The notes under the pieces were generated by a model, which worked only from the letters and a program-made list of their open reading frames with translations, made no database searches and was not told the origin of the DNA. 64,000 nucleotides of DNA, taken from assembly GCF_004010195.1 (NCBI RefSeq), contig NC_057732.1, positions 39,097,644 through 39,161,643 on the forward strand. Reading direction: 5' to 3'. Source of the stretch: Chiloscyllium plagiosum. Lineage: Eukaryota. Positions 27,053 to 59,581 of the stretch are shown here, one piece after another. The translations under genes and the position numbers were made by a program. Each line of letters starts with the position of its first letter. Position 1 is the first letter of the stretch.

Positions 27053-27098
27053 ATGAAAATTTTCTACACTTTTCTACAGCTGCTGTTACCATTTACAG
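27053..27098 (+). CDS. Gene 1 exon 1: signal peptide MKIFYTFLQLLLPFT(D)
   Basis: ATG at 27053 (in-frame upstream ATG at 27044), hydrophobic leader, ACAG|GTACTT donor in phase 1 matching the V exon; predicted cleavage TDG|QRD. Confidence 0.75.
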
Positions 27099-30000
27099 GT
27101 ACTTATTGAACTGAAGCGCTGTTTGTAATTGGGTGTGCATTAAACTTGAAGTTAGAGTTGCAGAAAACTATAGCGGAGAAATTTATCGTGAAAAGTAACA
27201 TTGCCAGTCACGATATGAATCAATTCTCTATAATTTAATTATTTCTCCACTGAGTTTTTAGTTACCACTGTTTTTTCAAACTAAAATAGGAGCTTTACAA
27301 TTTTGCCTATATCAGCTGCATTTAATATATTTACAAATATATATAAACTTTGTTTTTACTGATGTCTAAAGGAACTCCCACCCGGTTTTAATTGCCATTG
27401 TTTAATTTAATTGTGCAGCATGCCAAACCGTCTCTATGCTGATAAATGTAACTAAAATCTGTGGAAAACGTACTTAAACTTTCCAAAACAAATTTTGTAC
27501 CCGTTTGATTTCACTGGTGTTTAAATCACTTGTTCATGTGCCGCTCGTGAGGCCAGAGTTGATGTTCCTCAATTCACTTTTCATACAGTATTGTTTTGTA
27601 TCACTATAACATTTTTGTTGTAACATGGCATAATGTTTTCAGTTAGTAAGGTGGTTACAGACAATAATATCCTCCATTCTATATTATTTTGCTCTATATA
27701 AGTTTATTTTGTAAATAGATCTGCTTACTTGACCATTTCCCATATATTTCATTACCAGTGATGTTCTTATAATCACACACATTCGGCAACTTTGTGACCG
27801 TCTCTGACTTCTTAACACAATGTACAAAATTTCTCTGGTTTACTTTTAAACCCCTGTCGGAGCATCTTCAAAATTATGACCGAACAAGATTGAAAATATA
27901 TATAATATTTTGCATAAGAAACATAAGACACATTACTGTGAATACAGAAAAAAAACTCCTCTATTTGAACAAAGGGATTAAGTGAGTTAACTAGCCCTAT
28001 AACTGTAGTCCAGGCTTTTCATATATTCACATTCATTGCTAATAATGCATACATTTAACTTTTCTCAAGATGGACAGCGAGATTTACAACAGCTTGCGCA
28101 TCTTTCCGTCGAAAAGGGAGGCTTGATCTCGTTAGATTGTTTCCATTCAGTACCTAACCTACAAAGATTCGAAGCACGGTGGGTTTTCCGCAATAATAAC
28201 CAAGCACCTCCAAAGATCATTGCCAACCTATCGACCAGTGTATCCCAAGTGACTCATTATCGATATTTTGCAATGCATAATTTCCATAAGAAAGCATTCA
28301 CCTTAAGGATTACTGATGTTCAAGTCAGTGACACAGGACGCTACCACTGTGAGATGTTTCAGACCGCGCCTCCACCGAGTGGTAAAAGAATTGGCAAAGG
28401 AACGATGCTGAGTGTAACAGGTAACAATTTTACAATCGCATTCTTAATATGCCTTGGAATACTGGTGAAAACTTTAGCAGCAATGAATAAGTCATAAAGA
28501 TGAGACGCTTCAAGTTTGATCGCCACTCTATGCAGTTAGCTAATGTTAGCCAGCATGATGGTAGAATTGCTACACTTGACCCCAGGGCGCCAGGGTTTGT
28601 AAAGTTCTCAGTCTCAGTGCATTGTAAGAATTCCAGATGGAAATGTACATTAATAACAATGATGGAAGGCAGAAGGATCCTAATCCCCAGAACAGCTTTG
28701 TGGCTTTGACTTTCCAAGGTCAAACATGAAGAATATTCACAGGAGAAGTTCTGGAGAGAACCTCAGGTGCTGTACATCAGCAAAGGGTGATGTATTTTCA
28801 GAAATGATGAAGGGAAAATAATAATAGGAAAATGAGTCAAGAAAGTAAGTAACAAAAATAAACGGCAAAGCAACAGTCACACCAACGGTGCAAACTTAGA
28901 AAGCTATTATACATTTCCATCACAATAATTTACTCGTTTGTCGCGGGGAAATGGAGAAGAGACAATTATTCACCAATCTTTGGGATAAAAATGCTGGGAT
29001 ACGGACTTGTATCAGCATCAAATCGTAATATATAGGTTAAAATTCCATTTATTCTACTCTAAAGCGGATCATACTTTTCCCAATTCGTTAGCAGGATTAA
29101 TGCAAATGAAATAATGAGGAAAACTCTGACAGTACTAACAAATTTTCTCATTACTGAACACAACTTTCCTTCCTTGCCTACAATATTGAAGCAAAGATTT
29201 GTTGACTTCTTGAAGGTTTAGAAGTTCCCAACCCATCAACTTGGTTTTGGTTTGGTGATTCTACAGTCCGCCATAGAATCATAGGATCTCTACAGGTTTC
29301 ATGGAGTCCACACCGACCCTCCGAAGATCATCCCACCCAGACCCACTCAGTCCCTGTAACTCCACATTTCCCATGGCTAATCCACCCAGCCTGCACATCC
29401 CTGGGCATTACGGGGCAATGTAGCATGGCCAATCCATCCAATATGCACATCCTAGTAACATTCAGTTTGTTCTCGGCTTTGTAAAGACAGCCATGACACG
29501 CCCCTGCCGTTTTCTTTTAATAATTGTATATAAGTTGACAATTCCGCCGTAGGTTTCACCTCAATTCTCTCTTTAAAATAAAGAGCACACGGTAAACATT
29601 GCACTTGACAATAATTAAGTGACATTTCTTGATTTATGAGTTAAGCCTATCAACTTTTCGAAAACACTGGAAACAGGCAGCATGTCAGTGAGCACATCTG
29701 CAGAAGAAGGGACAAGTTAACATTTTAAGTATAATTCTTCAACAAATTTTTTGTACCCGCAGAGTTTTGTTTGACCTTTTCAGCGTGGTATATCATTGAA
29801 AGAAGCTAATTTCCTTTTGCAAAACGTTGGTGAGGGGCTGAGAACAGCAATGATTTTCCTCAGTGTCAATAAAATTTCATAATTAACCACGAAATTAAAA
29901 TATCTGCAGGGAACTCTACACATTGTGCCCGTCGCGCTCTTAACAAGTGTGTTAAGTCTTTGCTGAATTGAGTAATTACCAGCCACTCTTCTAACTTCAA

Positions 30001-33000
30001 CCATATGACGCTCTAATAATAAGAGTAGGAGAGGAGTCCTATGACGACCCCAGTGGCATCACCAACTTGACTTCAAGTGGGCATTTGCTGTTGTACCAGT
30101 CGATGCCGGGCGAATCACCAGTGTCCATTTGACACCGTTCTGCAAAATTAACCCGGCATGAACTGGGGAGTCGCTCTTTCGTGAGAACCTCCCGAATCCG
30201 TGTCTACAGGGTTGGGAAGAATCCACTCAAGTCAGACTTGTTGGGAATCCAATGTAGCTGACATGATTCGTGGGGTGGTGATGATATTGTTAGCGCTCTC
30301 GTGAGTGGTGCATACCTTGCTTATTCAATTAAGGCAATGGGAGGAAGGAATGGACAAAAGAAAACTGATAAGAGGTGGGAAGAAGACAAAACAGCAAGGC
30401 GCCGGGAGTTATTGGAGGGATAACATAGTGTTAATGGGGCAGGGACTGAAGAGCCTGGTGGAACTGTGAGTGGTTGAGCAAATAGAACATTGAGCAATTC
30501 GCATCCGATGCTAGAATAGGAGTCAGGCTGAAAATAGTAACAAATAATGGCAAATCTAACAGATCTGAAACAGCAAAGCAGATGGGATGGGAATAGAGTC
30601 GGTGGACCAAGAGGAATGTAAAATCAGGAAGAAGGGAAAGATTTCATGTGAGAAGTAAAGTGCAGTTGCCATTCTGGTGAAAGACTAAAACAAAACTAGA
30701 GAGTGAGTAAAAAGGAAAATATGTAAATAGTTGGTACCACTTAACCTGTGATTTATTACTAAAAAATCCCTTCTTTATGTTTAGATATCTGTTCAAGATA
30801 TCTGTTTACATAGTTTTAATAGCTTTGAAGTCTGAATGGTTCAATTGCACATTGAGCCGATATTAATCTGATTCTATTATTAATCTATTCTCTGCCCTCC
30901 TTTTTATAACTAGCTCCTCCTTCTCTTTGGCTATTTATATCTTCTAAAGAAACAGTTTCTTCATCTTCAGCTATAATCAACTGTTCAGCACATGATTTTT
31001 ATCCAAAAACAATCATAATGATGTTTCAAACAACCTGCCTCATCAACCAGCTCACCAATGAAAGCCAGATATCCAACCCTGATGGAATGTACAACTACAT
31101 AGCCATTGTTAATATCTCCACTGAAAACTGCAATAACTCAAACAAATTCACTTGTATAATTCAGCATCCTGCTTCACAATTCAAGACAAACCACACCATC
31201 CTCATTCATGTACACCCAAGAGATGAAGGTAAGATGTAACATTATCAACCTCTTCTGAATGTGTATCTGTGTTATTTTTCTTTTAATATGTGGTGGAAAA
31301 ATTGTTTCATTTGCTGTGGGTGAAATAGATGACGCACAATTTTGGGGCCAGAATATTACCAAGGATAGAGAATTGGCAAACTATCGGAAGACAGAGAGGT
31401 GGAGTAAAGGAGTAATTTTAAGAAGGGAACTTGCCACAGGGATCAATACTGGGATTGAAAAGCCTTTGCCTTTCTTCATCATATATACACCTCTAAGGTA
31501 AATTTGCCATAATTCTACTAGATCATAGGGCTGTTCTCTCATGAGAGAGAGAGAGATGATTGGTGGTGGTTTAGTCTGAGGGTCGCCATACCTCAAGCAA
31601 CCTGGGGGGGAAGAGGAGAGTCCTTCATAGAAACCTTAGCTGGACCAGGAATTGAACCAATGCTGTTTGTGTTACTCTGTATCCTAAATCAGCTATCCAG
31701 TCAACTGATCTAACCAAACCCCTTCAGTTTCCAAACTCAGTTCTGAAGAAGGGTCACTGGACTTGAAATGTTATCTCTGTTTTCTCTCCATAGATACTAC
31801 CAGACTTGCTGAATTTCTCCAGCAATTTGTCTGTTTGTTTCAGACTCCCAGCATCTGAGTTCTTTGCTTGATCTAAATGTATTCAATTTGAGTTTTAACA
31901 GGTTGTCTGCATAATTCATACACACTCATATTTTACAGATCATAATGGACATCTTTGGATGCTGCCATTCATTTTACTTTCCATTTGCGGTGGAATAGCT
32001 TGTACTATTCTTCTTGTGCTTTTTCTCATAAAATACATACATGGTAAGTGGTTCTCCAGCAAATAAAATACTGTAGTTTACTTCCTGAGGAACTTAATCT
32101 GTTTTCAAACACTGATAGTGCAACCGCAATTCTTACTCCCCCTTCCCCTGGAATCAGCTATCTACCAACATCCCATTAGATTTATTTATATTCACTCAAT
32201 TGACTGGAGATATAAAATATTATCATAATTACTAATAAAATACTCCAAGTTTTGCATCTCCCTGGTTAGGTGTATCTCTGCCTTTTGTACAAAATCTCTG
32301 ATTACAATCACCTTATGCAATCCCTTTAGTTGTTCAAAGTCTTGCATTGTACCAGTTGCTCAATTGCCTTTTTTCTAAAAGAACAGATTTTCGACAAACT
32401 CTGTTCATAATTAAGCTTATACGTGGATTTGGTTTTGATTCCACCTTTCTGATTCCAAACCACTGTCTCTAAATCCACTTGTAAATGATGTCTCACTGAT
32501 TGGGTACAATGTTCATTCTTTCATCACTTATTTAAGAATGTGGTCACCTCGTGTACTTTTTAAAGATCTTATTGTTATATGCCATATTAAACATTTATCA
32601 GGGAGTGATCATGACATGAATTATTTCCCCAGTCAAAAAACACTATTGCTCATGGGTTACTTTCATTTTGAACAATAATAGCTGAGATTACAGATTATGT
32701 ATGACGATCGCTATATTCTTCATCTGACATTTCTCTGAATGTTTAATTCTAAATAGTTTTTTAAAATTCACTAACTTTGATTCTATTTATGTATTATGCT
32801 ACTTTCCCATGATATAAAGACTGTACCAGTTGTGCTAAACACCAATACATCAAGATTTTACATGATTTAATTTAATAATATCCAATCATGAGCTTAAAGT
32901 TATCATCTATGATTCTCATTTGGACCTGGAGGTAACAAAACCAGATTACAATGTGTTCATAAGCAGCACATATATTTTGTTTGAAAAATATTAATAGGAG

Positions 33001-36000
33001 CTCATTTAAACATGGTTATCATGACCATTATAACAATATTTAAATAATACTAACAGTTGGCAGTTATGCTTTCCTTTATTAGTCAGAGTATTGAGTATAG
33101 GCGTTGGGAGGTCATATTGCAGCTATACAGGACGTTGGTTAGACCACTTTTGGATTATCACATACAATTCTGGTCTCCTTCCTATCGGAAGGATGTTGTG
33201 AAACTTGAAAGGGTTCAGAAAAGATTTACAAGGATGTTGCCAGGGTTGGGTGGTTTGAGTTATAGGGAGAGGTTGAATAGGCTGAGCCTGTTTCCCCTGG
33301 AGTTTCGGAGGCTGAGGGGTGACCTTCTAGAGGTTTATAAAATCATGAGGGGCATGGATAGGACATATAGACAAAGTCTTTTCCCTGGGGAGGGGGAGAC
33401 CAGAATCAGAACTAGAGGGCATAGGTTTAGGGTGAGAGGGGAAAGATATAAAAGAGACCTAAGAGGCAGCTTTTTCACGCAGAGGGTGGTGTGTGTATGG
33501 AATAAGCTGCGAGAGGAAGTGGTGGAGGCTGGTGCAATTGCAACATTTAAAAGGCATCTGGATGTGTAAATGAATGGGAAGGGTTTGGAGGGATATGGGC
33601 CAGGTGCTGGCAAGTGGATTAGGTTGGGATGTCTGGTCGGCATGGATGAGTTGGACTGAAGGGTCTGTTTCTGTCGCTGTAAATCTCTCTGACTCTAAGT
33701 ATTTTGAGTCAGCAACGGTTTGGACCGTGGTATTGCTGAACTCCCTGAATTATATGTAAGTTCAATTCAATGCTTCTTCTGCTTGTGGTTTAGGGGTTCC
33801 CTGTATGGGCGGGTCACAAGCACACTGAAGTTGGCAGGCCTGCTAAACAACTAAGATAAGATTTTGTTTTCTACCCCGAAGTGTTATCATACACAACTGA
33901 GTATCTTCCTATCACCAGAATCACTGTGACGTTTTGTTTTGCCTTTCTTTTAAACTAGCAACCATCACCTGTAAAAACATCCATGCAACTAATTGAACAT
34001 TTGCAAGCAAAGCCCTTTATGGACAATACAAACCATCAAATGAGAGAGGAAGGAGGATTAGGGAGAACAGGAAGGGACTAAATCAAAATGGTGTTGGAAG
34101 GGGAAATAAAGTACTATATCCCCAATAGTGCTAACCTCTCTCTAAAGGCATCACATGCTCCTTCTCCAATGACACTCAGGCACAAATATATCCAAGAACG
34201 CTGCAAGAGCCTAGAGAAGAAATTGCGGTGGCCTTGGCTGATATTTTTGCTTTATCATTAGCCACAGGTGACCAGGAAGGTTGAGGAGTGCAGGGCGGTG
34301 GACTATATAAATTTCAGTAAAGCCTTTGATTACAATGCACATGGTAGACTACTCTGGAAGGTTAGATTGCATGGGATCCAAGGTGAGCTGGCAAATTGGA
34401 TACAAAATTGGCTTGATGGTAGGAAGCAAAGGGTAATGGAAAGATGTTTGTCAGACTGGAGACCTGAGACTAGTGGAATGCCTCAGAGGTTGGTACTGGG
34501 CCCATTGCTGTTTGTTATCCATATCAATGATTTGCATGAGAATGTACAAAGCATGATTAGTAAGTTTGCAGATGACACTAAAATAGGTGGTGTTGTGGAC
34601 AGTGAGGAAGGTTATCAGAAATTGCAGCAGGACCTTGATCAGCTGGGGAAGTGGGCTGAGAAATGGCAAATGGAGTTTAATTTGGATAAGTGTGAGGTCT
34701 TGCATTTTGGAAAATCAAATCAAGGTAGAAGTTTCACTGTAAATGGTAAGGCCTTAAGGGGTCTGGTGGAACAGAGGAATCTTGGAGTTCTCTGAAAGTG
34801 GTGTCACAGGTAGACAGTACAGTGAAGAAGGCTTTTGGCACACAGGTCTTCATCAGTCAGGGCATTGAATATAGAAGTTGGGGAGTTATGTTGCAGTTAT
34901 ACAGGACATTGGTGAGGTCGCACTTTGAGTATTATGTTCAGTTTTGGTCACCTTGTTATAGGAAAGATGTTATTACACTGGAAAGGGTGCAGAAGAAATT
35001 TACAAAGATGTTGCCTGGATTCAAGTTATAGGGAGAGGTTGAACAAGCTAGAACTTTTGTCTTTAGAGCGTAGGAGACTGAGGGTGGATCTTATAGAGGT
35101 GGACAAGAACATGACAGGTATGAATGCACTCAGTCTTTTTCCCAGGGTTGGGAACTAGAGGGCATCAGTTTAAGGTTAGACGGGGAAAAAAAACAAAAGG
35201 GAGCCTGAGGGGCAATTTTTTTACATGGAGGTTGGTGCACATATGGAATAAGCTGCCAGCAGATGTGGTTGAGGTGGGTGCATTAACAACATTTAAAAGG
35301 CATTTAGACAAATACATGGATAGGAAGAGATTAGAAGGATATGAAACAAGTGCAGGGAAATGGAGTTAGCATGGATGAACATTTTGGTCAGCATGGATCA
35401 GTTTGGGCCAAAGGGCCTATCTCCGTGCTATAGGACTCTCTGACTCTATGACTCTATGGATGTAACTGCAGAAGAGGAGCAGACAGTCAGCAGAGATGAC
35501 TCCCTCCATAGCCTGCTGCCTGGACATGGTATAGCCAGCCCAACCAAGCCCAAGAACAGACCCACAAGAAAGCCCTCCAATCTGCCTACACTCCTCCATA
35601 CCAGATGTCCAAAAATCAGAAGTATAGAGCTGAAGCGTAATCAAAAACAAAACAAAATGTTTTACAAATAACTAAAGATGGGGTGCAAAAGTCCACAATC
35701 AACATAAATTTAGTCCCTGGACTCCACAGCGCCACAAAATAAACAGTTAAGGCTGTTAGTCCATGAACTACTGCAATCTGTGGTTATGCAGGACTGCTGT
35801 ATTCAATACCCTGCAGGTCTCTGATGGAAAGTGGGAGTGTCCCATGAAGAGAGCTCTTGATTGGGGTTCTCAATCACCTGGTAACAAATAATCAAGCCAA
35901 AGTATCCATGCAGCTGACGTAAGACTTGAGGTGGACGGTGTGCACCAGCAGCCTTTACAAAAACAAAAGCCTCTTTACAAGGTGGAAAGATATGCTACAC

Positions 36001-38908
36001 ATAAGAGGCATCTTAAGGGATAAATGTAGGGGAATGGGTCTGGGTGGGTTGCACTTCGGCGGGTCGGTGTGGACTTGTTGGGCCGAAGGGCCTGTTTCCA
36101 CACTGTAAGTAATCTAATCTAATCTAATCTCAGGTTGTGAGGGAGGTTAAGGACCCAAGATTTTTTTTGATACTGCAGTTAAACAATCTACTTGCTTCAA
36201 TGATCCAGTTGCTTGTGCAAGGGGAAACTTTCTGGCTGATCAGTGAGTCAACCAGTGAAACAGGGCCCAAAAGTCAACTTCTTTAATAAGTCACTCTTTC
36301 TTTAATTTCAGTTAGTTTCACAAGCAGCAAAATCACCAACATTCCTTTCCTTTCATCGACAATGACAATCTGCTGACCTAGACAGGTGCTAATTGCAACT
36401 TTCTTAACTAAACATTTTAATGGATCTGTTGGGCCATTATGACATTGGGGCAGGGACTCTAGTTTTGGGCCATAAAGTTAAAAATCACGCACAACAAGAC
36501 TGACCCCTCCACTTTTAAAAAAAAATTAACCTATTTTTCTAAACAAGCTGTTCAAAGATGTTATTACACCACCTCTGGAGTTGGTGGGACTTGAACCCAG
36601 GTCCTCGTCCAGGGGTAGCAACAAGACCTCTGCACCACAAGACCCACCCACCACCTTCATTTCCTTTCTCAATTTTTTTTTGTTTTTCAAAAACTGCCAC
36701 AATACCACTGCACCCAAGAGGGCCAGCACTAATGTTTATATTTTTCCCCAAATCAACTGTGGCAATTTTTTCCTCAGTGTCACAGTAAGAAGACACCATT
36801 GTGTGTATACATTAATATTCATTTTTTCCACCAGTAGGAAAACACCCATGTGGCCAATTGAATATTAACAAGCAAAGGCTGTTAAGGGCAATGTTGTCAT
36901 TAAAATGGGAGGGGGGGTGGCGGTGGTGATGATGTTAGGAGAGAAGGAGGGGCTTAAATCAAAATGGAGTTGGAGGCAGAAATAAAGTACTGTATCCTCT
37001 GTGGTACCCACCTCTCCCTAAAGGCATCCAGAGCATTGATGGACACACATGTTCCATCTCCAATGACCCCCAGGCTTGTCCCTCCACTTTCTTAATGAAA
37101 TGCTTAATTATTACAAAACAGACTTTTAGATGTCACAATTAAATGTTCAATGTTTCAGAGTTAATTGTACTACCAATGGTCCTCAACTAATAATTCAAAA
37201 ACACTTTTCATTTGTGTTTAAATCATTCCATTACGAATGAGATTAATAAATCATAAGTATTTCTTTCCAGGTTCCTTTTTGCTAACATTAATCTTTGTTG
37301 TCACAATTTGTAACCAAATTTAAGTAATTACATTAAGCAAATATATTAAGCAAATATATATTCTTCTCATGCACATTTGTACATGTTTTATTGTAAATCT
37401 TTCCCTTTGGTTTTTGCCTGGCGTCCAGAACCATTTCTGCCTTAATATTGTTTATACTTCTCATTTTTGTTTTGTTACACGTGAAGAAATCAAATCAAGA
37501 AAAATGAGTACAATTAAAGTAAAAAAATAAACATATGATTAAACATCAATGCACCTAACAACATACAATTATATTCTTCTATGTCATAATTTTTATTTTA
37601 TATAGGAAGAAAAGGAACTCAAGGAAGAAAAGGAAATCATGCAAGTAATCAAAGTTTGCGCTGTAGACAAGATAGCATCATAAATGTAAATTTAATTTTT
37701 ACAATATGGACACATAATTTAGGGTCCTAAAACCTGGCCTTATTCTTGATTCTTCTGCAACTACCTATTAAACATATTTAACAAAATTTTGTTCATATCC
37801 AACCAGGCCAGATAAAGCAGACTGACTTGGCAGAACACAGCATAGACTCATACAATCCCTACATTGTGGAAACAGGATATTCAGTTCATTGAGTCCACAC
37901 CAACCCTACAAAAAGCAGCCCACCTCCACCCAGCCCCCTACCCCATCCCTGTAACTCTGCAGTTCCCGTGACTAACCCACACAGCCTGAACATCCCTGGA
38001 CACTGTGGGCAATTTAGCATGGCCAACCCAGCTAAGCTGCACATCTTTGAACTGTGGGAGGGAACTGGAACACCAAGAGGAAACTCAAGCAGACACGGGG
38101 AGAATGTGCAAACTCTACACAGCCTCCCAAGGGTGGAATCGAACCTGAGTCCCTGGTGCTTTGAGGCAGCAGTAGTAACCACTGTACCACTATGCTGTCC
38201 CAAGCCAATGGCAGATAGCCAAACTTTTGATGAGTTAAGGAGGGTGGAGGATCGGAGCCCAGCCAGGAAAACAATAGGAATAGGTTTCAGCAAATGACCA
38301 GAAGGAACTGACACCAGGCGTTTGCTAGCAGGGGCTGATACTGAAAAACACAATAAATACATGAAAGAATAATATAGGTAGCAAGAATGTGAACATTTCT
38401 AGTCATAGATCTTTGCAATGACTGACAAATTGGGAACTGAAGCTATATGATAAGACCTAACTCAGATTAGTTTGATGGTACTAATTTTGAATGTCACAGT
38501 TGTTACAATATAAGCCATTTACTCACTGAAATCATTGTTAATATGTCAAAACATTTTTTAAAATTAACAAATTGAAATCACACCTTTGTCTGCTTGGCTC
38601 AGTTTATTTAATGAGAAATTCAGATGACAAGAGCAACAAAGTACAAAAAGTAAGAGATAAATTGAGGTAAAAAGAGTAACAGGTCCCGATTTTTAAAGTG
38701 TGCAGTTGGTATGAGTAATAGGTGCTCAGAAAATGAAGAACAGAAAATGTAAATACAAATGAATATCTTTCCCATTTTTCAGGAGGAGAGCAGCGGGAAT
38801 AATATATGTTATGCAGAACTGCAATTGGAAAACTTGCAGCAGACATTAAAACAAAAGGAAGAGGAGACTGTCTACAGTTCAGTGCTTCACTCAAATTCTG
38901 GTGAATAG
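27053..38908 (+). CDS. Gene 1 (whole model): VJ-C1-TM-ITIM/ITSM Ig-superfamily inhibitory receptor (SIRP-like / antigen-receptor-like), ~342 aa
   Basis: join(27053..27098,28070..28420,30914..31228,31939..32043,37606..37644,38603..38649,38783..38908). All introns are GT-AG with phases 1,1,1,1,1,0 and the frame is open throughout (1029 nt including stop). Confidence 0.85.
28070..28420 (+). CDS. Gene 1 exon 2: germline-joined VJ-type IgV domain
   Basis: tttctcaAG acceptor and ACAG|GTAACA donor; LDC (B strand), ARW (C strand), FTLRITDVQVSDTGRYHC (E/F strands), J-like IGKGTMLSVT. Confidence 0.95.
30914..31228 (+). CDS. Gene 1 exon 3: Ig C1-set domain
   Basis: Pyrimidine tract + tAG acceptor and GAAG|GTAAGA donor; APPSLWLF..INCSAHDFYPKTI..NPDGMYNY..FTCIIQHP carries the C1 motifs CxxxxFYP, NxDGxY and FxCxxxH. 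Confidence 0.92.
31939..32043 (+). CDS. Gene 1 exon 4: transmembrane segment
   Basis: ttttacAG acceptor and CATG|GTAAGT donor; DHNGHLWMLPFILLSICGGIACTILLVLFLIKYIH, with no charged residue in the membrane. Confidence 0.92.
33057..33697 (+). mobile_element. CR1/HER1 LINE 3' end in gene 1 intron 4
   Basis: ORF '[53 protein letters not shown]' followed by the CR1 3' UTR. Confidence 0.92.
34205..35455 (+). mobile_element. CR1 LINE RT and 3' end in gene 1 intron 4
   Basis: 'FSKAFD..GMPQRLVLGPLLFVIHINDL..ISKFADDTK..KWQMEFN'; (GACTCTAT)n-type tail. Confidence 0.92.
37606..37644 (+). CDS. Gene 1 exon 5: basic juxtamembrane cytoplasmic exon (GRKGTQGRKGNHA)
   Basis: T-rich tract + atAG acceptor; A|GTAATC donor, with an alternative in-phase donor after 37653; phase 1 to 1; basic stop-transfer residues. 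Confidence 0.6.
37845..38178 (-). mobile_element. HE1-type SINE in a gene 1 intron
   Basis: Reverse complement of the HE1 head, core and tail. Confidence 0.85.
38603..38649 (+). CDS. Gene 1 exon 6: cytoplasmic exon (IYLMRNSDDKSNKVQK)
   Basis: cctttgtctgcttggctcAG acceptor (alternative in-frame acceptor at 38624) and AAA|GTAAGA donor; supplies the phase 1 to 0 bridge needed to reach the ITIM exon. Confidence 0.6.
38783..38908 (+). CDS. Gene 1 exon 7: ITIM + ITSM terminal exon
   Basis: ctttcccatttttcAG acceptor; EESSGNNICYAELQLENLQQTLKQKEEETVYSSVLHSNSGE*. ICYAEL fits IxYxxL and TVYSSV fits TxYxxV. Confidence 0.88.
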   Translation, partial: EESSGNNICYAELQLENLQQTLKQKEEETVYSSVLHSNSGE

Positions 38909-39246
38909 GACACCCAAGAAGTACTGACATGGATCATTGGCTACCTTGTTTAAAGTAAGCTAGTTATAACAGTGACTAGAATTTAACATAAATAAGGCAA
39001 AGGCTTTGCTACTGGCATACAACATAGAGATGAAACAGGAAAGCTTTACACCGACCCCGAGTTTCCCTCCACTCTCCTGACTTAGAACTCTATCACTGTT
39101 CCTTCAGAGTCACAAGGTTTGACTCAGCTTCATACCTCCACCAGAAGGACTGCAGCAGTTCAAAAAAGCAGCTCAAAACTGCCTTGGGCAATTAGGGATA
39201 GACAATAACTGCTGGCCTAGCTAGCAACAAACAAATCAGTTGAACA

Positions 39247-39252
39247 AATAAA
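39247..39252 (+). terminator. Candidate polyadenylation signal for gene 1
   Basis: First AATAAA I found downstream of the stop (~340 nt), followed by T/GT-rich sequence; it lies at the tail of a repeat fragment. Confidence 0.4.
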
Positions 39253-42211: not shown

Positions 42212-42305
42212 CTATTGCTAGGATACCTATAGATCTCATACACCAAACATTCTGTAACCTTTGGAGGGGGATAGAATACAACAGTGTGCTGCACGTTTAA
42301 TAAAC

Positions 42306-42306
<1 letters not shown>

Positions 42307-42337
<31 letters not shown>
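42307..42337. repeat. (AC)n microsatellite
   Basis: acacatacacacacacacacacacacacaca. Confidence 0.9.
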
Positions 42338-48635: not shown

Positions 48636-50831
48636 TCAGCAAAGGGAGTTAGTGATTTTTTTCCCCCAAAAAAGAACATGCAGAGTTACAGGGTGAATGC
48701 AGGAGAATGTCAGCTCAGGAAATACTTGTTCAGATCACTGGTGCTGACATTATATGCTAAATGGCCTCTGATGGTTCTGTAACAATTCTGCAATTGTGAA
48801 CAGAACATCTCTTCTTTTTTGATTAAGCTCTTTATAGCCTTCCAAGTCCAACGTTGACTTCACCCAATTTCAAATAATAACTAGCATTTTTATTTTCTCA
48901 GACTGCAACTGTTGCAAATAACAATGACACCGTGCAGATAAGTAATTTGTTATTTTACTTGTGTCCCATCATCTCCTTTTGCTTTGCGCATTGCATTATC
49001 ATTTAATTCCTCCTTCCCCCTCATCTTTCAACTTTGTTCTCCTCCCTGTTAGCTCTGTACTTACTTAAAACCAGTAAGTTTGTTTTTGCAGTGGTCTTAA
49101 ATTGGATTGCCTTCCTTAGGCCATTTGTCACTAACATAATCCTATGCAGAAATAACATTTCTATGATGCAGAAGAACATAATTAACCTGAAATGTTAACT
49201 CTGTTCTTATCTTCTTGGATACTATCAAAACTACTCAGCATTTTTTGTTTTCATTCCCTAGAGTGGAATTGAGTTGATTTCTCCCATTGCAGTGCATAAA
49301 ACAGATTGAAATTAGAACCAACAATAGACGGGTAAAACAAAGAACTGTGATGCTAAACATCTGAAACAAAAACAGAACTTGCTGGAGAAACTGGTAGCAT
49401 TTGTGGTGAGAATGCTGAGTTAAAGATTCAGTTAAAAACTCATTTTTGTCTCCACTGATGGTGCCAGTCTCTCCAGAAATTTGTTTTGATTTCAGCAAAG
49501 AATGAAACTTGGTAAATCTTACAAACAAAGCGCTTACTGCCTATCATTTTGTGGGAACTGGTGTTGCCGACATTCCATGTAGCCTCTTTGAGGCGTGACC
49601 GCTCCTCCACACTGTCAGAATCTGAATCAGACTCCACACTGGCCGCCGCCATCTTCGACCTCCCTCCGCACTGCTTGCGGTTGGGTTACGGTAGAAGGTA
49701 GAATAGTTGCAGTATCAGCCATGATTGAATGGCACAGCAGACTCAGTAGGCTGAATGGCCTTATTCCCACATATATTATACACTTGCTGCTGTACTTTTC
49801 GTACCAAGAGTGAAATGCTTTCAGCATTGACTAGATTTTGCCTTGTTGAATTTTTCTGTGAATTGCTCTTCTGCAGATGACAGTTCAGCTCTTTCAGCTA
49901 CTGATGTCTACACAAGTTACTCTCTTACATTCTTCTGATATCACTGGATCCAAAGTGCTATCTACTCTTTGTATTGTTCAAATTTGCAACAGCGCTCACC
50001 ATGTTATAACATGATGTAATGCCCCCTGCTGGCAACATGTTGTATAATGAATCATACACCATGGCTCATTGTGTTTATGTGCTCACTGGATTCTTTGCCT
50101 GGTAGATTTAGGAATGATAGGACCTGCTTTGTCTAGTGGGATGAGAGGAAAACCACTGGGCAGGGTAAATAGAAGAGACTCATTTCTTCAACAATGTATT
50201 TTATTACATGTTGGCAATTTACAAACAAGTTACGTTGGATGATAGACATGGTTCCTAAAAGTACCAGGAGACTGGATCTGTCTCCTTCCAGATTCAGAGC
50301 TGTTTCCCTATCTATGTCCTCCTGATATCATCATATTTGCTAGGGCTTAATGCACTCTGCAGCATTAACCCTTTTAGAACCAAACATCTCATACAACACA
50401 TGAAGACACACATTTAATAGTAACAACAATAAAGTATACAATTCTAGTGAGGGTGCACTAGCAGAAGATCCTGCGTGTGTATGTGCATATAGCATTAAAA
50501 GTGGCAGGATAAAGTGGTTAGAAATGTACACAGAGTCCTAATAGGGGCATAAGTGATGAAAATGTGGGCTTGTACAGAACAATTTTAACTTGGCGTCTCT
50601 GGGGAAATGTCCCTTGGAAAGGATGTCGGCCTCGGGGCCCCATCGGGATCAAACATTCTACTTGCGAGTCTCAGTTGGATCTGCCACAACACGGAAGCTG
50701 AGTTCTCAGTATCTACCGGTACAGTTACCGATCACATTTACAACATCCGGTAGCCAAAAGTACTCTCTGACATCATGCGGATGTTTTTGTTGTCGCAATT
50801 TCGTGGTTGCTCTGTAACTGGCCGCCCCCAG

Positions 50832-50840
50832 TTCCGGGAA
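50832..50840. promoter_or_regulatory. GAS (STAT-binding) element TTCCGGGAA
   Basis: Exact TTC-N3-GAA consensus within the CpG-rich region. Confidence 0.5.
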
Positions 50841-51176
50841 CAGAATCGTCCAGGTCAACAGAAGAGGAAGAAGGCCCTTCAGCCCATCGGGTGTGCACTG
50901 GTCATAAACAATCACCTAACTATTCCAATACTATTATCCAGCACTTTAACCAATTGTAAGCCTTGTCATTCAGATAAGTACATTTCAATATTTTTAAATG
51001 ATGTGAGGGAAACGCGATTTCTAGAAATTGAGAGTATGTTAAGGCTGAAATTGTCTGAATTAAACAGGAATTCGGAAGGGGAAGCGGTTTAGGCAATTTG
51101 GGGAAAAAGCGTTGTAACTTTTTGCGTCGATGAACTTTGTCACTCGCTGAATTTTTATTCCGAAGTTAAACAAGTC

Positions 51177-51188
51177 AGTTTCACTTTC
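51177..51188. promoter_or_regulatory. ISRE / IRF-E element AGTTTCACTTTC
   Basis: Exact match to AGTTTCNNTTTC, ~110 bp upstream of the candidate first donor. Confidence 0.6.
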
Positions 51189-51444
51189 ACAAGTTCACTG
51201 CGTCAACAGTTATCGTCAAACGAATAGTGCCAGAATAGATCGCGAACTTTTCTCCCGGGTCGTAAGACGCGTTTGTTTTCTCTCTCATTTTGGGGATCAG
51301 GTACAGAATCAGAATTTACCTCCCACTTCGTGTTTTTATTGCTCCATCGATCGGTTTCGTTGTTGTCAGGTGACCAAATGATCATCAGAAAAGAACTGTA
51401 AATGAGAAACAAAAATATAAATTACTGGAGCAGCTCAGCAGCGT

Positions 51445-51570
51445 CCTGATGAAGGGCTAATGCCCTAAACATCGACTCTCCTGCTCTTCAGATGCTGCCT
51501 GACCTGCTGTGCTTTTCCAGCACCACACTCTCGACTCCGACCTCCAGCATCTGCAGCCCTCACTTTCTCC
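51445..51570 (+). mobile_element. Penelope-like terminal-repeat fragment
   Basis: cctgatgaagggctaatgccctaaac...ctccagcatctgcagccctcactttctcc, the same family as 23485-23597. Confidence 0.7.
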
Positions 51571-52199
51571 CAAATGATGATAGTAGCTCACGACAACTGA
51601 ATAAATGACAGAACTCAAGGAAATTGGGACCCGGGTCCTGGAAGGTTGGGGAGTGATGGGAATTCTCCAGTTCCCTCTCCTGTTGCAAACAAATCTCTAA
51701 ACTGCTCAGTGAGCATTGCTTCTCTATCGGTTCTTCTTGCTGAAATAATCCAATAGTAATCCCACTCTCCTGGAATATTAGATGTTTCAAAGCAGAGAAC
51801 TATAAACATTTCAGAGACATTAAAACGAATCTTCTGCTTGTTCAAGTTTGCAGGCACTTGGAGCTTTTTAAGCCACTGTCATTATGCTAAGTGAAACCAG
51901 CCTTTCGGAAACCACGGGCTGTTTTTGTGTGCATGATCTAAATTATCACAAAGGACTCTCCAAGGTACTTCAAGGATCAGTGAAACAGATGACCAAACAA
52001 CAAGACGTCTTATTTTAAGAAGGGTGGTCTTTAATTGGAGATCCCTGGAGTGAATCATATTGTGACGATTGATGACTAGTTGGTGAGTTTATTTTTATAA
52101 TTGAAGAGAATGCAAACTGAGAGTCAAATGAAAGAGCTAAAAAGAATAGTTTTCTTTGATCCTAAAGTTGGATGCAGCCAGACAGATGTGACAGAGTTG

Positions 52200-53550: not shown

Positions 53551-53732
53551 TTGGAACTATTAAGTAGCGAGTCTGAATGATTCTTTTAACTTAAGGTGCC
53601 AGTGAAGCACCTATCACCTTTTGTTCTAATCATCAGTCACTCTGGACACACAATTGCCACAAACCTTGAATAGCTATTTGGAAAAATCTTTAATGACTCA
53701 TTTCATTCCAATGGATTTTTGGTTTTCAGGCA

Positions 53733-53793
53733 ATGGAGAGTCCACTGTGCATCACATTGTGGTCACTTCTGTTCCTTCAACAGCTTTTCTTAG
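53733..53793 (+). CDS. Gene 2 leader exon MESPLCITLWSLLFLQQLFLG
   Basis: ggttttcAG acceptor before 53730, Kozak-like GCAATGG, hydrophobic leader, strong TTAG|GTAAGT donor, phase 1. Confidence 0.85.
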
Positions 53794-56700
53794 GTAAGTG
53801 CCTTGTCTTTTTTTTCAGGAGTTTCTCACGTGTAATTGACTGTCTGGTTAAATCTGTCTGGATCATGTTTAGTTTTGGTTTTAACAAGTGATCTCTTGCT
53901 GAAACACAATGCTGCAGATTTTGTTTTAACAATAAACCAAAAGTTTACTAACAAAGGAAACAAAGATAAAAATGAAGAAACTAAATCATCTAACCGTAAC
54001 ACACATTCAAAGATCTTTAAATGCTTTGTAAGAGTGTAATCCCATAAATCCCAAAATGCACTTTTATAAATTGAAAATAAAATAAAACAGCTTTTGTTTT
54101 TACAATACTCATGAAATACATACATTAAAACCCCTGTATCTAACACCATGATAGGTTTAATTTGCTGTGACTTCAACTTACTGACTTGAACTGTGGATAG
54201 TTTCTTCTTGGAACTATTATCCACCTTAGTTTGAATATAACCACTTCAGGGTTTTATCCCAACATTCTGGTCTGTGATAACATTGCTCTTCATTCTATAA
54301 GGATACTGAGTTCCCTATGTCCTGTCCTTGCCTCTTGGGCTGTACATCCATTCGAGGGCTTTCCAGGACTTCCTCAGTCAAAGAAAACCTAAGAACAAAT
54401 AGCTGCCTGTCAAAAGCTATGTTTTTTTCCCTTAAGCTTAAACAAACAAGTTCCAAAAGTCTCTAACAAATGTTGAAACTCCAGTATTTATGTTGGTGAG
54501 TCCAAAACAAGCCAAAATAATCAAACTTTTATTAATGGTGTACAAAAAGTTTGGCTTCAAAAACTGCTTTACTAACAAAAAAAATCACTATGGCTTCGGA
54601 AATATTTAAGTTAATTATTAATTTCAGACACACAGAAAACCCACAGGCCGGTTACTCAAAACCAAAATCCCAAACGTAGAATAAATGGCATTACATATAA
54701 ATGACAAGAGTTTACACCACACTGATATATACAATGAATGAGAATCTAAGGAAGACAGATATGAAATTAGTAAGCCTGTAGAGAAATTGATGTCAGTGAG
54801 AATTTGTTTTGGATCAAACTGCAATAGTCAAGCAGAAAAATAGTTAGTGCCATTTGTGATTCTTTTCTTTGAAAGGAAAGCAGTATTAATGGCACATGAA
54901 CAATGGGGCTATAATTTAAAAAGTTAAGCTCAAGCTGAGGGAAAACAATTTACATTAAATAGCAATACATCACTTCTTTTCAGAAATCCCAAATGCTGAA
55001 AATAATAAGTTTTAAAGGACAATTACCACTCTTGTGTGGACAAATACATCAGCCTTTGTGAACAGTAAGAAAACACAAGCCATATATGTAACATTTGGGA
55101 TTCAGCAGTCATACATCCTTAAAATAAGTTTGACTATTTGTAAATAATTTTAAGGTGGTTTATTACATTTATAAAGAAAACAGTTTAGATATAGTGCTTA
55201 GCTAAATAGGCAGGAAAAGTTTACAATCTGTGACAGGGGAAGGCAGTTCTCCAATACCAGTGACAAACGGACACTTGGCACAGAACGTATTGACCTCAGG
55301 AGGGAGTGATGGAAGCATTCTGCTCTCTCCAGGTGAAGTGTTGGGGTGGTTCTCCTTTCTTGGTCCATTTTCTATCTGAAGAAAACAGCAGTCTGGTGAG
55401 AACTGCCACATCATGATGACTGCAATCCATCTCTGAACCCTTCTTGATTTACTTTATTTCCAGGTGATATACCCTATTTCAAAATCATTCCTTTGAACCT
55501 TTCTAACTGCTGAATACAGGCTTTGCATTCTTTCCAAGACGAAATACATAGGGCCTCAGTATAATATCCAAATGGTAGCATTTTATTCAGTAACACACTG
55601 AAGTGGCAGTCATGCACTCAAATCCTGAAATAGGATTTGAAACTGTCCATATTGACCAATTACATCACAATCTAAATATTGTTGGTCCAGATACTAGAGT
55701 TGAGTAATCATGATTTTACATTTAGACAGGGTTGTAATGGCAGATTGGAAGATAAGATTTGACTTGTGTGGGAAAGGGAGAGCTTTTACACCTTTATCTT
55801 GTAGATTGGTTCCTTTTGGGAATTTCAATAGATTGGGCAGAAACCATTAAATGGAATGGATGTTCTGAATGGGGCAAATGACCACTTCTTGTTTCATCCT
55901 TATTTGTATATTGTATGTCTAATATTTTCATTAGGTGATGGATCCTTCATCCAGATCTGCGGCGTCTTAGGTGAAGACATCTTACTGCCCTGCACCTTTA
56001 CTGTTGCATCCAACTTTAGTCTGCAGCAACTTGTCATTACCTGGCAGTGGACAGTCAGTTTAATTGTGGTTCATAGCTACTACAATGAGAAAAACCATCC
56101 AGAGTATCAGGACCCAGCATTCAGAGGACGTACTGAACTATTTCCCGAAAACTTCCCCAATGGAAATGCTTCACTCAGATTGAAAGAAGCAGCCACATCA
56201 GACATGGGGAACTACACCTGCTTTGTAATTCAGGAGGATGGAAAAGGCTACATTGAAAATTTGGTGGAACTGAAATTATATGGTAAGCTTGTAGATATCT
56301 CCCAGCCGTAAATAAAAGTACATGCAAAACTTGTTGAGAGAATTGTGCCCAGGCAGGGAATAATCACCTGGAAATTGTTTCAAATCTTTCACATATTTAA
56401 ATGTTTCAGGGAGATTCATGAGAATGGAGCTTGTTAGACTGTAAGAAAGTTATATCATATATTCAGTCACTTGTGTGCTGTGTAGAAGATGAACTACACA
56501 TCAGTTTGAGTAAACCGTTTAACTATCAATTATCCTGTTCGCTTAAATAATTTGTCATGGGCCCCCAACTTTCTTTAGTCTGAGAATACCTTTAGGTTTG
56601 AAGTGTTCTGCCCAACTTCACCTGAAACTGCTTTTTTTTTTAGTCAGCTTATTAACAAGACTTAATGGACAGCAGGCATAAGCCTGACACTTGGAAGCTA

Positions 56701-59581
56701 ATGAACCTAAAAGCTCAAATCTGACAGGCATGATGGAAGGTTGTCATATTCAAGAATTTCTTGATGTCCAGTTCAGTTTGGATGACCTCTGCCTCTGATC
56801 CTTGTGCTACCATCTGGGAGATAGAGGGACCTGCTTTGTCCCAACTTCCAGGATGTTGTTGCCTCCCACCCTGCAGACAGAGACAGGGTGTTAGTTGAGA
56901 CCCATTTCTTTTCAAAGATGGTGCTCTTCTGATATTGGTGGAGGAGGATAAGATGGAATTGCTAGTTATTAACGTGTCCCTTGGTACGAGAAATCCCATA
57001 ATCTCAGTGGAAATCCAGCAATCCCAAGCAAGAACATGAGCACAGAGCCAGTGTTGCAATCTTCCTGACCCTTTATCCCTTACTTTTGGTGATTGAGTTT
57101 GAGGGGAAAATCAGACCCCAATCATCCTGCTAACTCCCAGACATTTTATGCTCCAGTTAGCTGTTCAATGAAGCTTCTGAGCTGGTGGTCACACATTTAC
57201 TAATAATTAATTGAGGAAACATTAAGGATTTCATTAGATTTATTTGATAAAGGGGAGATTCTAAGGTCTCAAGTACAATTTAAAGTTTAGCACCCACAGG
57301 CATTCAAGATTATTATATAATGTAAACTGAATGGCATTACCTATACTTATGAAATATTATACTCAAATGAATGTTAGATATTTTAGGATAAAACACATTT
57401 CAGACAGACACAATGTAGCAGAAATGGCCATAGCATAAATGAATGAATAAAAATAAATCATAGTCTAATGCCACCATATGGTTAATTGAAGTATATAGAT
57501 CTTACTGAAATATCATTACATTCAGATGCAAACTGTAGACCTTAAGTTGGTATCTGGTACTTTTTAACAACCCTATATTCTAATAATTTAACTATTAAGT
57601 AGTGCAAAAAATTTAGTTGTTTATTTAGGCAAAAGCTGAAAACAGAAGCTAAATTGGTACTTGGGAAATATGGCATGACTGTCTGGAGTCTGGGTTTAGT
57701 GCAAGTTTTGGTCCTTATTACTGATTATCATAATTTAATTTGTCTGGAGGCAATAAAGAAGATTTATTCATATTTAGCACTTAATTTCTGTGGAGAAGAT
57801 TTTGTGGACTCTTCTAAATCACTTACAGTGCAGGCCTCTGCCTGGTAGATGCACATTAGCGTGTTATAACAAGGGCCAAAGCATGGAGTAAAGTGTGCAC
57901 AGTTCTTGCATACAGCACTTGAGGTTGGACGAGGTCCAGAGAAGGAGAAAGCACTGAACTAAAAGGCACAGGCACCATTCTTCCATTCCTCCCGTCCCGC
58001 TCTCCTGCAGTAGGCAGTGCCATGGCATAGTGTCATGTCCTTCTCCCATTCTTTGTCCAAAACGAATGGGAATCACTAACAAGATTGCCTTGACCAGGTA
58101 CTCCCTTTCTGCTGCTGACTCCAAGAAGAGTGTCAGAGCACTTAACTCCCTTTTTTTAGGTGAACTCCTCAGAGAATTCTTTGAATAAGTGTTGCTGTAA
58201 AGTTATTGAAGAGTTCAGTCTCTAAGAAAGTCTTACAATTTATTCAGTAGCAGCTTCTCAATTGCAGCAGCAAATTGAGATGGTCAAGAGTATCCATTTA
58301 AACAGTATTTCAAATCCATAACAACACTTTGTTTACTTCCAAGTAAATTGTTGGGGGATGGTATTAGAACAAGTCTCCTAATTGAGCACTGTAGGCATTT
58401 TTAGTATCAGTCAACCCTTTTACAAGCTTCTGAATAGCTGTTCTAAATTGTTCTTTTACTAAGATGACATTCTGCTCTAAACACAGCTGAACTGGCATTT
58501 CGGTTTAAGAACAAAGAACAAAGAAAATTTACAGCCCAGGAACAGGCCCTTTGGCCCTCCAAGCCTGAGCCAATCCAAATCCACTGTCTAAACCTGTCGC
58601 CCAATTCCTAAGCATCTGTATGTTTCTGCTCCCCACCTATTCATGCATCTGTCCAGATGCACCTTAAATGAATCTACCGTGCCTGCCTCTACTACCTCTG
58701 CTGGCAACGCATTCCAGGCACCTACCACCCTGTCTATAAAGTACTTGCCATATATAGCCCCATTAAACTTTTCACAACTCACCTTGAAAGTGTGACCTCT
58801 CGTTATTGAATCCCTCACCCTGGGAAAAAGCTTATCTCTATCCACCCTGTCTATATCCTTCATGACTTTGTAGACCTCAGTCAGGGCCCCCCTCAATCTC
58901 CTTTTTTCTAATGAAAACAATCCTAACCTAGTCAACCTCCCTTCATAGCTAGCACCTTCCATACCAGGCAACATCCTTATAAACCTTCTCTGCACTCTCT
59001 CCAAAGAGTCCACATCCTTTTGGCAGTGTGGTGACCAGAGCTGTACACAGTATTCTAAATGTGGCCAAACTAAAGTCTTGTACAATTTTAACATGACCTG
59101 CCAGCTCTTATACTCAGTATTCCGTCCGATGAAGGCAAGCATACCATATGCCTTCTTGACCACTCTATCCACCTGTGCAACCACTTTCAGGGTACAATGG
59201 ACCTGAACTCCCAGATCTCTCTGCTCATCAACTTTTCCCAAGGCTCTTCTGTTTACAGTATAGTTTGCTCTGGTCACTGTGATCACATCAGAGGATAATT
59301 AACACCTGAACATGCTAGTTAAGATAGCTCATTTCATGGGAAGAAGAGTGAACATTGTATCTCAGCTGTTAATGGAGTGATTAAACCATAATTTTATACT
59401 TCTAAATATCCTAGATAAACCACTGGTCATTGGAAATGACGATACCGCAGTTTTGCACAGACAAAGAGCAATTTATACACTTGGATTCATAAGTGGAGCA
59501 CTGATTGTTTTAATTGGATTTAGAGTTGGATATTCGGAAATGCAAAAGAAGAAGCAACAAATTTCCAACGAGAGTGAGTAA
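53733..59581 (+). CDS. Gene 2 (whole model): B7-family (CD276/HHLA2-like) single-IgV type I membrane protein, ~191 aa or slightly longer
   Basis: join(53733..53793,55935..56282,59415..59581), or the last exon ends at donor 59573 and splices onward; phase-1 GT-AG introns and an open frame. Confidence 0.75.
55935..56282 (+). CDS. Gene 2 IgV exon, B7/butyrophilin family
   Basis: ttttcattAG acceptor and TATG|GTAAGC donor; GEDILLPCTF..FSLQQLVITWQ..VHSYY..QDPAFRGRTELFP..NGNASLRL..DMGNYTCFV are B7-family signatures shared with CD276, HHLA2 and VTCN1. Confidence 0.95.
58507..59272 (-). mobile_element. Young 5'-truncated CR1/HER1 LINE in a gene 2 intron
   Basis: 232-aa ORF 58588..59286 is the CR1 ORF2 C-terminus (QRDLGVQVH, LEYCVQLWSP, ITRGH); tail repeat aagaacaaagaacaaagaa. 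Confidence 0.93.
59415..59581 (+). CDS. Gene 2 stalk/TM/cytoplasmic exon
   Basis: atcctAG acceptor, phase 1; DKPLVIGNDDTAVLHRQR-AIYTLGFISGALIVLIGFRVGY-SEMQKKKQQISNESE*; a perfect GTGAGT donor follows 59573. Confidence 0.7.

Follow-up and report, generated by a model that had tools for sequence, protein, structure and literature searches.

A VJ-C1 receptor gene with an inhibitory-type tail beside a V-only B7-type gene in the bamboo shark Chiloscyllium plagiosum

A 64,000-nucleotide stretch of the bamboo shark genome (Chiloscyllium plagiosum, NC_057732.1; hereafter the window, whose positions serve as coordinates throughout, on the plus strand) contains two adjacent genes with immunoglobulin (Ig) domains. 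Gene 1 encodes a receptor with a joined variable and joining segment (VJ), one C1-set domain and a cytoplasmic tail with two tyrosine motifs, and gene 2 encodes a membrane protein with a single IgV domain of the B7 type. The explanation that we consider rather likely is that gene 1 is an inhibitory receptor resembling PRARP, that gene 2 is a V-only gene of the B7-H4/B7-H3 branch, and that their adjacency is the product of old clustering. Gene 1 would then be a non-rearranging, antigen-receptor-like type I membrane receptor (VJ plus one C1), whose loop of three prolines (PPP) would be engaged by a B7-family ligand, whereupon the two tail tyrosines would be phosphorylated, the tandem SH2 domains of SHP-1/SHP-2 would dock and the cell would be dampened. 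Gene 2 would be a single-IgV transmembrane member of its branch, expressed and spliced, and would be driven from a CpG-island promoter with an interferon-stimulated response element (ISRE) in it and a gamma-activated site (GAS) beside it, and hence be probably interferon-inducible.

Six-frame translation of the 64 kb yields only three Ig-type exons, all on the plus strand:

28070-28420, + strand, V exon of gene 1 (V1)
30914-31228, + strand, C1 exon of gene 1
55935-56282, + strand, V exon of gene 2 (V2)

The two genes are separated by approximately 12 kb of repeat-rich DNA. A preliminary description, made from the sequence, had proposed two adjacent, co-oriented genes, and both are real, as judged by Pfam domains, by the identity of gene 1 with RefSeq models and by the spliced contigs of gene 2. 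Its statement that these are the only two genes in 64 kb holds as far as long open reading frames can show: one of the nine other long open reading frames scanned with Pfam gave a match, to a reverse-transcriptase fragment. Exons of the window were searched singly; the steps that required a whole protein were performed with database proteins (P0175, P0005, P0001) and with an alignment of ten gene 1 family sequences (A1).

The VJ-C1 receptor gene and its family

The exons of gene 1 are as follows, P0175 being the RefSeq protein XP_043569912.1 of C. plagiosum (named 'immunoglobulin kappa light chain-like isoform X2'):

27044-38908, + strand, whole gene 1 (leader, VJ, C1, transmembrane, short cytoplasmic exon, tail with inhibitory motifs)
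27044-27098, + strand, exon 1, carrying the start codon and the greater part of the signal peptide; phase-1 end, donor GT at 27099 (tblastn with P0175, 100% over 27044-27097)
28070-28420, + strand, germline-joined VJ exon (IgV; Pfam V-set 5.3e-13; 100% to P0175)
30914-31228, + strand, C1-set Ig exon (Pfam C1-set 1.5e-9; 100% to P0175)
31939-32043, + strand, stalk and transmembrane exon (frames read; aligned to P0175 and P0172)
37606-37640 or 37606-37685, + strand, cytoplasmic exon with two alternative donors (tblastn with P0175 and P0179, 100%)
38783-38908, + strand, last exon, with the inhibitory motif ICYAEL, then TVYSSV and the stop codon (sequence read; tblastn with P0175)

By tblastn, all of these exons are 100% identical to RefSeq XP_043569912/XP_043569911 of C. 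plagiosum. RefSeq has five isoforms of gene 1 (XP_043569911-15); use of the donor at 37640 gives isoform X2 of 328 residues and use of the donor at 37685 gives isoform X1 of 343 residues, and the shorter isoforms have 294, 281 and 257 residues. The start at 27053 given in the preliminary description is the second in-frame methionine, the RefSeq start being 27044 (tblastn with P0175), and its exon set was incomplete: it lacked the cytoplasmic exon at 37606-37640/37685 (100% in P0175 and P0179), which is required because the phase-1 end of the transmembrane exon cannot otherwise read into the tail exon. The inhibitory VJ-C1 receptor that it had recognized is borne out by the Pfam V-set and C1-set domains, by the single VJ exon and by ICYAEL, an ITIM (immunoreceptor tyrosine-based inhibitory motif). 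The solved chains nearest to the V exon are Ig light chains and V domains of the T-cell receptor (TCR) alpha chain, and a J-like GxGTxLxV (here G-K-G-T-x-L-x-V) follows the FG loop inside the single exon 28070-28420. The membrane span, which is a helix at residues 248-274 of the predicted model, has no charged residue and thus fits an inhibitory rather than an adaptor-coupled receptor.

The PPP motif that had been noticed in the FG loop is present, immediately before the J-like segment. The signature of complementarity-determining region 3 (CDR3) that Quiniou et al. 2024 give for CD28X and CTLA-4 is YxCx6PPPx4/5GxG (PMC11599192), and the FG loop of gene 1 fits it exactly, letter for position (in the form YxCx6PPPx5GxG in the window). 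Applied as a regular expression, the signature is found in 14 of 20 family sequences, from 12 of 15 sources. The sequences missed are two isoforms of S. torazame in which S replaces the first G, two Narcine isoforms (with PAP and GxS), one catshark isoform that skips part of J and one houndshark model truncated at its N-terminus. Among the other 171 proteins collected, 25 carry the signature: 19 isoforms or cluster members of the family, four turtle fragments and two proteins outside these groups (P0030 and P0150). P0030, of 488 residues, has a tandem V-C1-V-C1 arrangement in which the second V has the full PPP...GxG and the first V has PPP but GxE, and gives a weak match to the Pfam 'ICOS V-set domain' (24.2 bits versus a cut-off of 28); it is possibly a relative of the gene 1 family that has undergone duplication.

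In the tail of gene 1, ICYAEL and TVYSSV are 21 residues apart. The second motif has the form TxYxx[VI], that of an ITSM (immunoreceptor tyrosine-based switch motif), in only two of the 20 family sequences, both of them bamboo-shark isoforms, and 13 of the 20 have two ITIM-type motifs, the second being [IV]VYSxV or similar; both tyrosines are invariant or nearly so in alignment A1. Since the threonine of the switch motif is confined to the bamboo shark and the 13 others resemble [IV]VYSxV, the conserved feature is a tandem ITIM. Thus, of the earlier proposal of an ITIM plus ITSM tail with PD-1-like logic, the presence of both motifs in the last exon stands, and the ITSM is peculiar to the bamboo shark, which weakens the PD-1-like logic. 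The expected partners of such ITIM tails are SHP-1 and SHP-2, which would be the partners of gene 1 also.

Comparison of the first V exon with 1.84 billion representative proteins gave 159 matches at E <= 0.001, the best of which are elasmobranch proteins of about 300-345 residues. Orthologues of gene 1 are found in whale shark, zebra shark, two catsharks, horn shark, sawshark, sevengill shark, a houndshark, a stingray and an electric ray; the elephant shark, a chimaera, has a V-domain fragment of the family, and spotted gar and sea turtles have more distant proteins with the same domain order as gene 1. Among the 191 proteins collected, P0175 aligns with a spotted gar protein (P0075) at 27.8% over 317 residues (E 1e-33) and with a loggerhead turtle protein at 27% over 255 residues (E 3e-27), and both alignments score far above V-only matches. 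The loggerhead protein has both V-set and C1-set domains by Pfam, and the C1-set match of the gar protein reaches 20.8 bits against a cut-off of 21. Between bamboo shark and whale shark the V domain is 83% identical. The invariant positions of A1 in the V domain are two cysteines, the tryptophan and the first and third prolines of PPP (the middle one is present in 9 of 10), and in the C1 domain and tail they are F-Y-P, an extra cysteine pair (C177 and C208, besides C216) and the first tail tyrosine.

When the profile of A1 was compared with all PDB sequences, UrIg2 (9dmx) came first (3.4e-25) and antibody chains next, with SIRP-alpha (2wng, 1.8e-22) no better than antibody chains and SIRP-gamma at 1.5e-19. 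An AlphaFold model of P0175, built with A1 at a mean predicted local distance difference test score (pLDDT) of 71.1 and searched against 48,161 chains, gave tied matches (Z 15-17.6) to TCR V domains, antibody chains, B7-H3, nectins and butyrophilins; as far as a predicted structure can, this search confirms a V-plus-C Ig ectodomain, and it is uninformative on family. RefSeq names members of the family Ig kappa light chain-like, SIRP-alpha-like, CEACAM1-like and Ig heavy chain Mem5-like (P0172, P0175, P0005, P0174, P0182), which is so inconsistent that the family is effectively unannotated.

By architecture, gene 1 most resembles PRARP, going by the list of features reported for that family. 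PRARP, reportedly described by Fu and colleagues in 2019, is said to be a gene pair found from bony fish to birds, whose VJ does not rearrange and which has an ITIM and, outside birds, a C1 domain. The non-rearranging VJ exon, the C1 domain, the transmembrane segment and the cytoplasmic ITIM attributed to PRARP are all present in gene 1, and the gar and turtle range of the gene 1 family fits the range reported for PRARP, which is said to be absent from mammals. The differences are that PRARP is said to occur as two genes side by side, whereas there are one VJ exon and one C1 exon in this 64 kb, and that PRARP reportedly has not been recorded from cartilaginous fish, whereas the gene 1 family is found in sharks and rays. 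Judged by architecture and by this reported description, gene 1 likely belongs to the PRARP family. Verissimo et al. 2023 cite PRARP among the VJ genes in the major histocompatibility complex (MHC) (PMC10751288), and Quiniou et al. 2024 mention it solely in a list of joined-VJ genes (PMC11599192).

Other known receptors have some of these features. Quiniou et al. give all nine members of the CD28 family a single V domain without C1 (PMC11599192), in contrast to gene 1, in which a C1-set domain follows V and which therefore falls outside the definition of that family. The same source gives CD28X a patchy range (sharks, rays, gar, turtles, birds and crocodiles, with loss in mammals) similar to that of the gene 1 family, and an EYEDM tail motif, whereas the tail of gene 1 has ITIMs. 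None of the synteny markers of CD28X (pudp, sts, anos1, nlgn4x, pnpla4) was seen within the 64-kb window. CD28X proper was rejected as the identity of gene 1 on account of the C1 domain and of the ITIM tail in place of EYEDM. UrIg and UrIg2, also of elasmobranchs, are similar to gene 1 in that C1-type domains come after a VJ exon that does not rearrange, but UrIg2 has 9 to 11 C domains (PMC12227049), as opposed to the single C1 domain and inhibitory tail of gene 1. A word search of that paper found no ITIM or ITSM, and Flajnik et al. 2025 place expression chiefly in liver and gill (PMC12227049). The multi-C architecture, compared to a single C1 exon, led to the rejection of UrIg/UrIg2 as well. 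The bamboo-shark protein is like PD-1 in having an ITIM followed by TxYxxV and in the proposed inhibitory logic with a B7-family ligand; it differs in that PD-1 consists of one V domain, without conserved prolines in its CDR3 (PMC11599192), and in that the threonine of the second motif is found in the bamboo shark only.

The V-only B7-type gene and its candidate promoter

Gene 2 was delimited with the aid of the whale-shark protein P0001 (XP_020371796.2, 'VTCN1-like', 190 residues) and of contigs from public RNA runs (X1, X2 and X3, from organisms A, B and C, respectively):

53730-53793, + strand, exon that holds the ATG (at 53733) and encodes the signal peptide; an acceptor precedes 53730 and the donor GT is at 53794 (spliced contigs of X1-X3; tblastn with P0001)
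55935-56282, + strand, IgV exon, B7-H4/B7-H3-like (Pfam V-set 1.2e-10; PDB matches; spliced contigs)
59415-59573, + strand, stalk, transmembrane and first cytoplasmic exon; donor GT at 59574 (spliced contigs; tblastn with P0001)

The B7-type IgV membrane protein of the preliminary description is supported by the V-set match, by the spliced transmembrane exon and by the best matches of the V exon in PDB, which are VTCN1 (B7-H4; 2.7e-17, 66 bits) and CD276 (B7-H3; about 56 bits per V domain). Further matches are to MOG (3e-13), BTN3A (about 1e-10), ICOSL, PD-L1 and CD86, and the canonical V-domain residues are intact. P0001, one of two matches among 15 candidates, is 77% identical over the V exon, and its leader, V and transmembrane parts map by tblastn to 53733-53793, 55935-56282 and 59415-59578. 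A second protein search found P0167, a cluster of 214-residue V-transmembrane proteins from transcript assemblies, with five members; P0001 and P0167 both have the Pfam V-set domain only, without IgC. Likewise, no C-type exon is present between 56283 and 59414 by six-frame reading or by tblastn with P0001, and the contigs join V directly to the transmembrane exon.

The likeness to B7-H4 and B7-H3 is therefore of the V domain, these being its best solved matches and the whale-shark orthologue being VTCN1-like to RefSeq; gene 2 differs from them in having no IgC domain and in having a true transmembrane segment with a cytoplasmic tail that continues into further exons. In the B7 family an IgC domain after IgV is typical but not universal, and gene 2 is V-only and at most a putative orthologue of VTCN1. 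MOG and the butyrophilins have a related IgV domain, and MOG is also a V-only membrane protein, but both score below B7-H4 and B7-H3 with gene 2. In the frames inspected between 59.5 and 64 kb, no open reading frame of the B30.2 type was noticed, the 3' exons of gene 2 not having been located.

Public runs were compared with 5,991 letters of the window; three of the four runs, from three studies, were informative, and the fourth, a single-cell run with 0 reads, was no test. The joints 53793/55935 and 56282/59415, both with GT..AG ends, are present in contigs of all three informative runs. Single contigs of X1 (3382 letters) and X2 (1300 letters) span both joints, with no differences from the window listed in their V and transmembrane pieces. 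The contigs of X3 have 12 differences from the window in the V exon and leave out 12 letters of the leader (four codons, at 53746), from which organism C is a close relative with a shorter leader. Between organism C and the window, seven of ten changed V codons alter the residue, as do three of the four listed in the transmembrane exon; the divergence of gene 2 is fast and near-neutral in ratio, the numbers being small.

The preliminary description had ended gene 2 at 59581. The contigs leave the transmembrane exon at 59573 and then continue for 463 letters (X2) and 2455 letters (X1) outside the compared stretch; thus, the stop codon at 59579-59581 is that of a read-through form, and the cytoplasmic tail continues into further exons. 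The whale-shark RefSeq model P0001 stops at the same three residues, at the read-through stop after the 59574 donor, and probably it, too, describes an unspliced form.

A place for the 5' end of gene 2 is proposed by position:

50832-51443, + strand, proposed site of the gene 2 promoter and of a 5' untranslated exon, at the window's strongest CpG island; holds a GAS and an ISRE

Because the ATG exon opens with an acceptor near 53730, one or more untranslated exons and the promoter must lie further upstream; in the spliced contigs, 265-355 letters precede this exon, outside the compared stretch. The CpG island at 50.9-51.5 kb, 2.4 kb before the ATG exon, is probably the natural place of the missing 5' exon and promoter. 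The ratio of observed to expected CpG is 1.33 at 51001-51400 versus 0.22 in the whole window, and the four top-scoring 400-base windows all lie within 50.9-51.6 kb. The GAS (TTCCGGGAA, 50832-50840) is just upstream of the island, and the ISRE (51177-51190), which matches the classical consensus in full, is inside the island and is followed by GT donors at 51300 and 51368. Within the window, the stretch 50700-51443 recurs only as a weak 60-base match at 21839-21897 (75% identity); from 51444 onward a dispersed repeat follows.

Fragments of long interspersed nuclear element (LINE) reverse transcriptase at 33057-35400 and 43488-44313, both on the plus strand (Pfam RVT_1 4e-16 for 34268-34792), are located in the long intron between the transmembrane and cytoplasmic exons of gene 1 and in the intergenic stretch. 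Short dispersed repeats are common to several places in the window (51444-51577, 42963-43073, 46055-46128 and others), and one of them abuts the CpG island. A retroelement fragment at 58450-59250, in the intron between the V and transmembrane exons of gene 2, includes a minus-strand open reading frame (58588-59286) that is like the C-terminal part of a reverse transcriptase and has no Pfam match. Its contig depths are in the thousands in all three contig runs, which indicates that this repeat family is either very abundant or highly transcribed in these sharks.

Linkage and alternative explanations

Consecutive RefSeq accessions usually denote neighbouring gene models. In the whale shark, the orthologues of gene 1 (XP_020371795.1) and gene 2 (XP_020371796.2) have consecutive accessions and are on one record of 50,604,709 bp, from which the adjacency of the two genes is probably kept in this species and so within Orectolobiformes. 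The suggestion that linkage is kept in cartilaginous fish is therefore probable for one further species, which belongs to the same order. The B7 genes lie in MHC paralogons, according to Quiniou et al. (PMC11599192). The adjacency of genes 1 and 2 most likely goes back to an old clustering in which VJ-type and B7-type genes shared MHC-related neighbourhoods, an account that is likelier than pairing.

Pairing is a reasonable conjecture, albeit an unlikely one. It holds that genes 1 and 2 are a cognate receptor and ligand kept in linkage, the CTLA-4-type loop of gene 1 binding the IgV face of gene 2, and that interferon would raise the ligand and so switch off the cells that bear the receptor; with a low probability, then, the PPP loop binds the product of the neighbouring gene and the locus is an ancient, interferon-tuned checkpoint pair still in linkage. 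The PPP...GxG loop is the signature with which the CD28/CTLA-4 family contacts B7, gene 2 is itself of the B7 family, the genes are adjacent on the same strand here and probably adjacent in the whale shark, their V domains have diverged similarly between the two sharks (83% identity for gene 1 and 77% for gene 2), and the likely promoter of gene 2 has an ISRE in it and a GAS beside it. However, the established CD28-B7 pairs are not known to be linked in mammals, and the receptors with a PPP loop bind the CD80/CD86/ICOSL branch and are not known to bind the B7-H3/B7-H4 branch; moreover, homologues of gene 1 reach gar and turtles, whereas the relatives of gene 2 are the whale-shark protein and one transcript cluster only (three proteins at E <= 1e-8 among 121 candidates, in a search bounded by word matching, length and annotation). 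Among the matches listed in the literature, neither the gene pair nor a V-only gene like B7-H4 from a shark is described, and a word search of a paper on shark PD-1 found none of six terms for B7-H3/H4, interferon or linkage (PMC12151841).

The two other alternatives concern the genes singly. Gene 2 could be a decaying B7 gene that has lost its IgC exon and, though still transcribed, lacks a function of its own, which would be consistent with the absence of an IgC-type exon between its V and transmembrane exons, with the protein search that found no bamboo-shark model and with a proportion of residue-altering V codons (seven of ten, window versus organism C) close to the neutral expectation. 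Decay is quite unlikely, considering that the three coding exons are open, have correct phase-1 boundaries and are spliced identically in three runs from three organisms, that the V-transmembrane build is kept in the whale shark and in the five-member cluster of 214-residue proteins, and that the canonical V-domain residues are intact. That gene 1 is an ordinary SIRP that binds CD47, the identity against which the preliminary description had asked its receptor to be checked, is very improbable. SIRP-alpha and gene 1 are alike in a VJ-type V domain followed by C1 and in an ITIM tail of the kind that recruits SHP phosphatases, but SIRP-alpha has two C1 domains and four tail tyrosines where gene 1 has one and two, and gene 1 has the conserved PPP...GxG loop, a CTLA-4-type feature. 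The match of SIRP-alpha to the family profile (1.8e-22) is no better than those of antibody chains and is surpassed by UrIg2 (3.4e-25). RefSeq does name some orthologues after SIRP ('tyrosine-protein phosphatase non-receptor type substrate 1-like' in catshark, Narcine, Heterodontus and one bamboo-shark isoform), but its naming is inconsistent across the family, which also includes 'Ig kappa light chain-like', 'CEACAM1-like' and 'Ig heavy chain Mem5-like' proteins. An ordinary SIRP was rejected on domain count, tyrosine count and an unremarkable profile score, and on this point the outcome favours the preliminary description.

The explanation preferred here, in which a PRARP-like receptor and a V-only B7-H4/B7-H3-branch gene are neighbours through old clustering, also has points that weigh against it. 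The membership of gene 1 in the PRARP family was judged from the feature list reported for PRARP, and adjacency in the whale shark from accession order rather than coordinates. For gene 2, the protein search found no bamboo-shark model, tblastn with P0167 within the window found nothing convincing as one or more 3' exons downstream of 59573, the promoter was assigned by position only, and the contig letters upstream of the ATG exon are unplaced. There are four ISRE-like matches in the window versus 1.86 expected, a number reached in 12 of 100 shuffles, and three palindromic GAS matches versus 1.13 expected, a number reached in 15 of 100. These counts are not above chance, and the GAS and ISRE owe their weight to their lying in or next to the strongest CpG island; of the earlier claim that both lie upstream of gene 2, the sites themselves and their place at or in the island stand, and their link to the gene is positional. 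Finally, the binding and signalling of gene 1 and the induction of gene 2 are predictions drawn from sequence.

Significance of the locus

Gene 1 is already a RefSeq model, and both genes fit known kinds of protein. Automatic naming hides the gene 1 family in RefSeq. Gene 1 joins features that usually occur separately, namely the body of an antigen-receptor chain (VJ plus C1) and the loop signature of CTLA-4 and CD28X, on an inhibitory tail, in a build that is kept from sharks and rays to turtles and that bears on the divergence of co-receptors and antigen receptors from a common VJ ancestor. Gene 2 means that a V-only, transcribed gene like B7-H4 and B7-H3 exists in sharks. The B7-H3/B7-H4 branch is not known to have an identified receptor in mammals. 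If the products of genes 1 and 2 were to bind each other, gene 1 would represent the first receptor class proposed for this branch, and the locus would offer a direct experimental handle on an orphan part of the B7 family; if they do not bind, the locus remains a clear case in which VJ-type and B7-type genes lie together.

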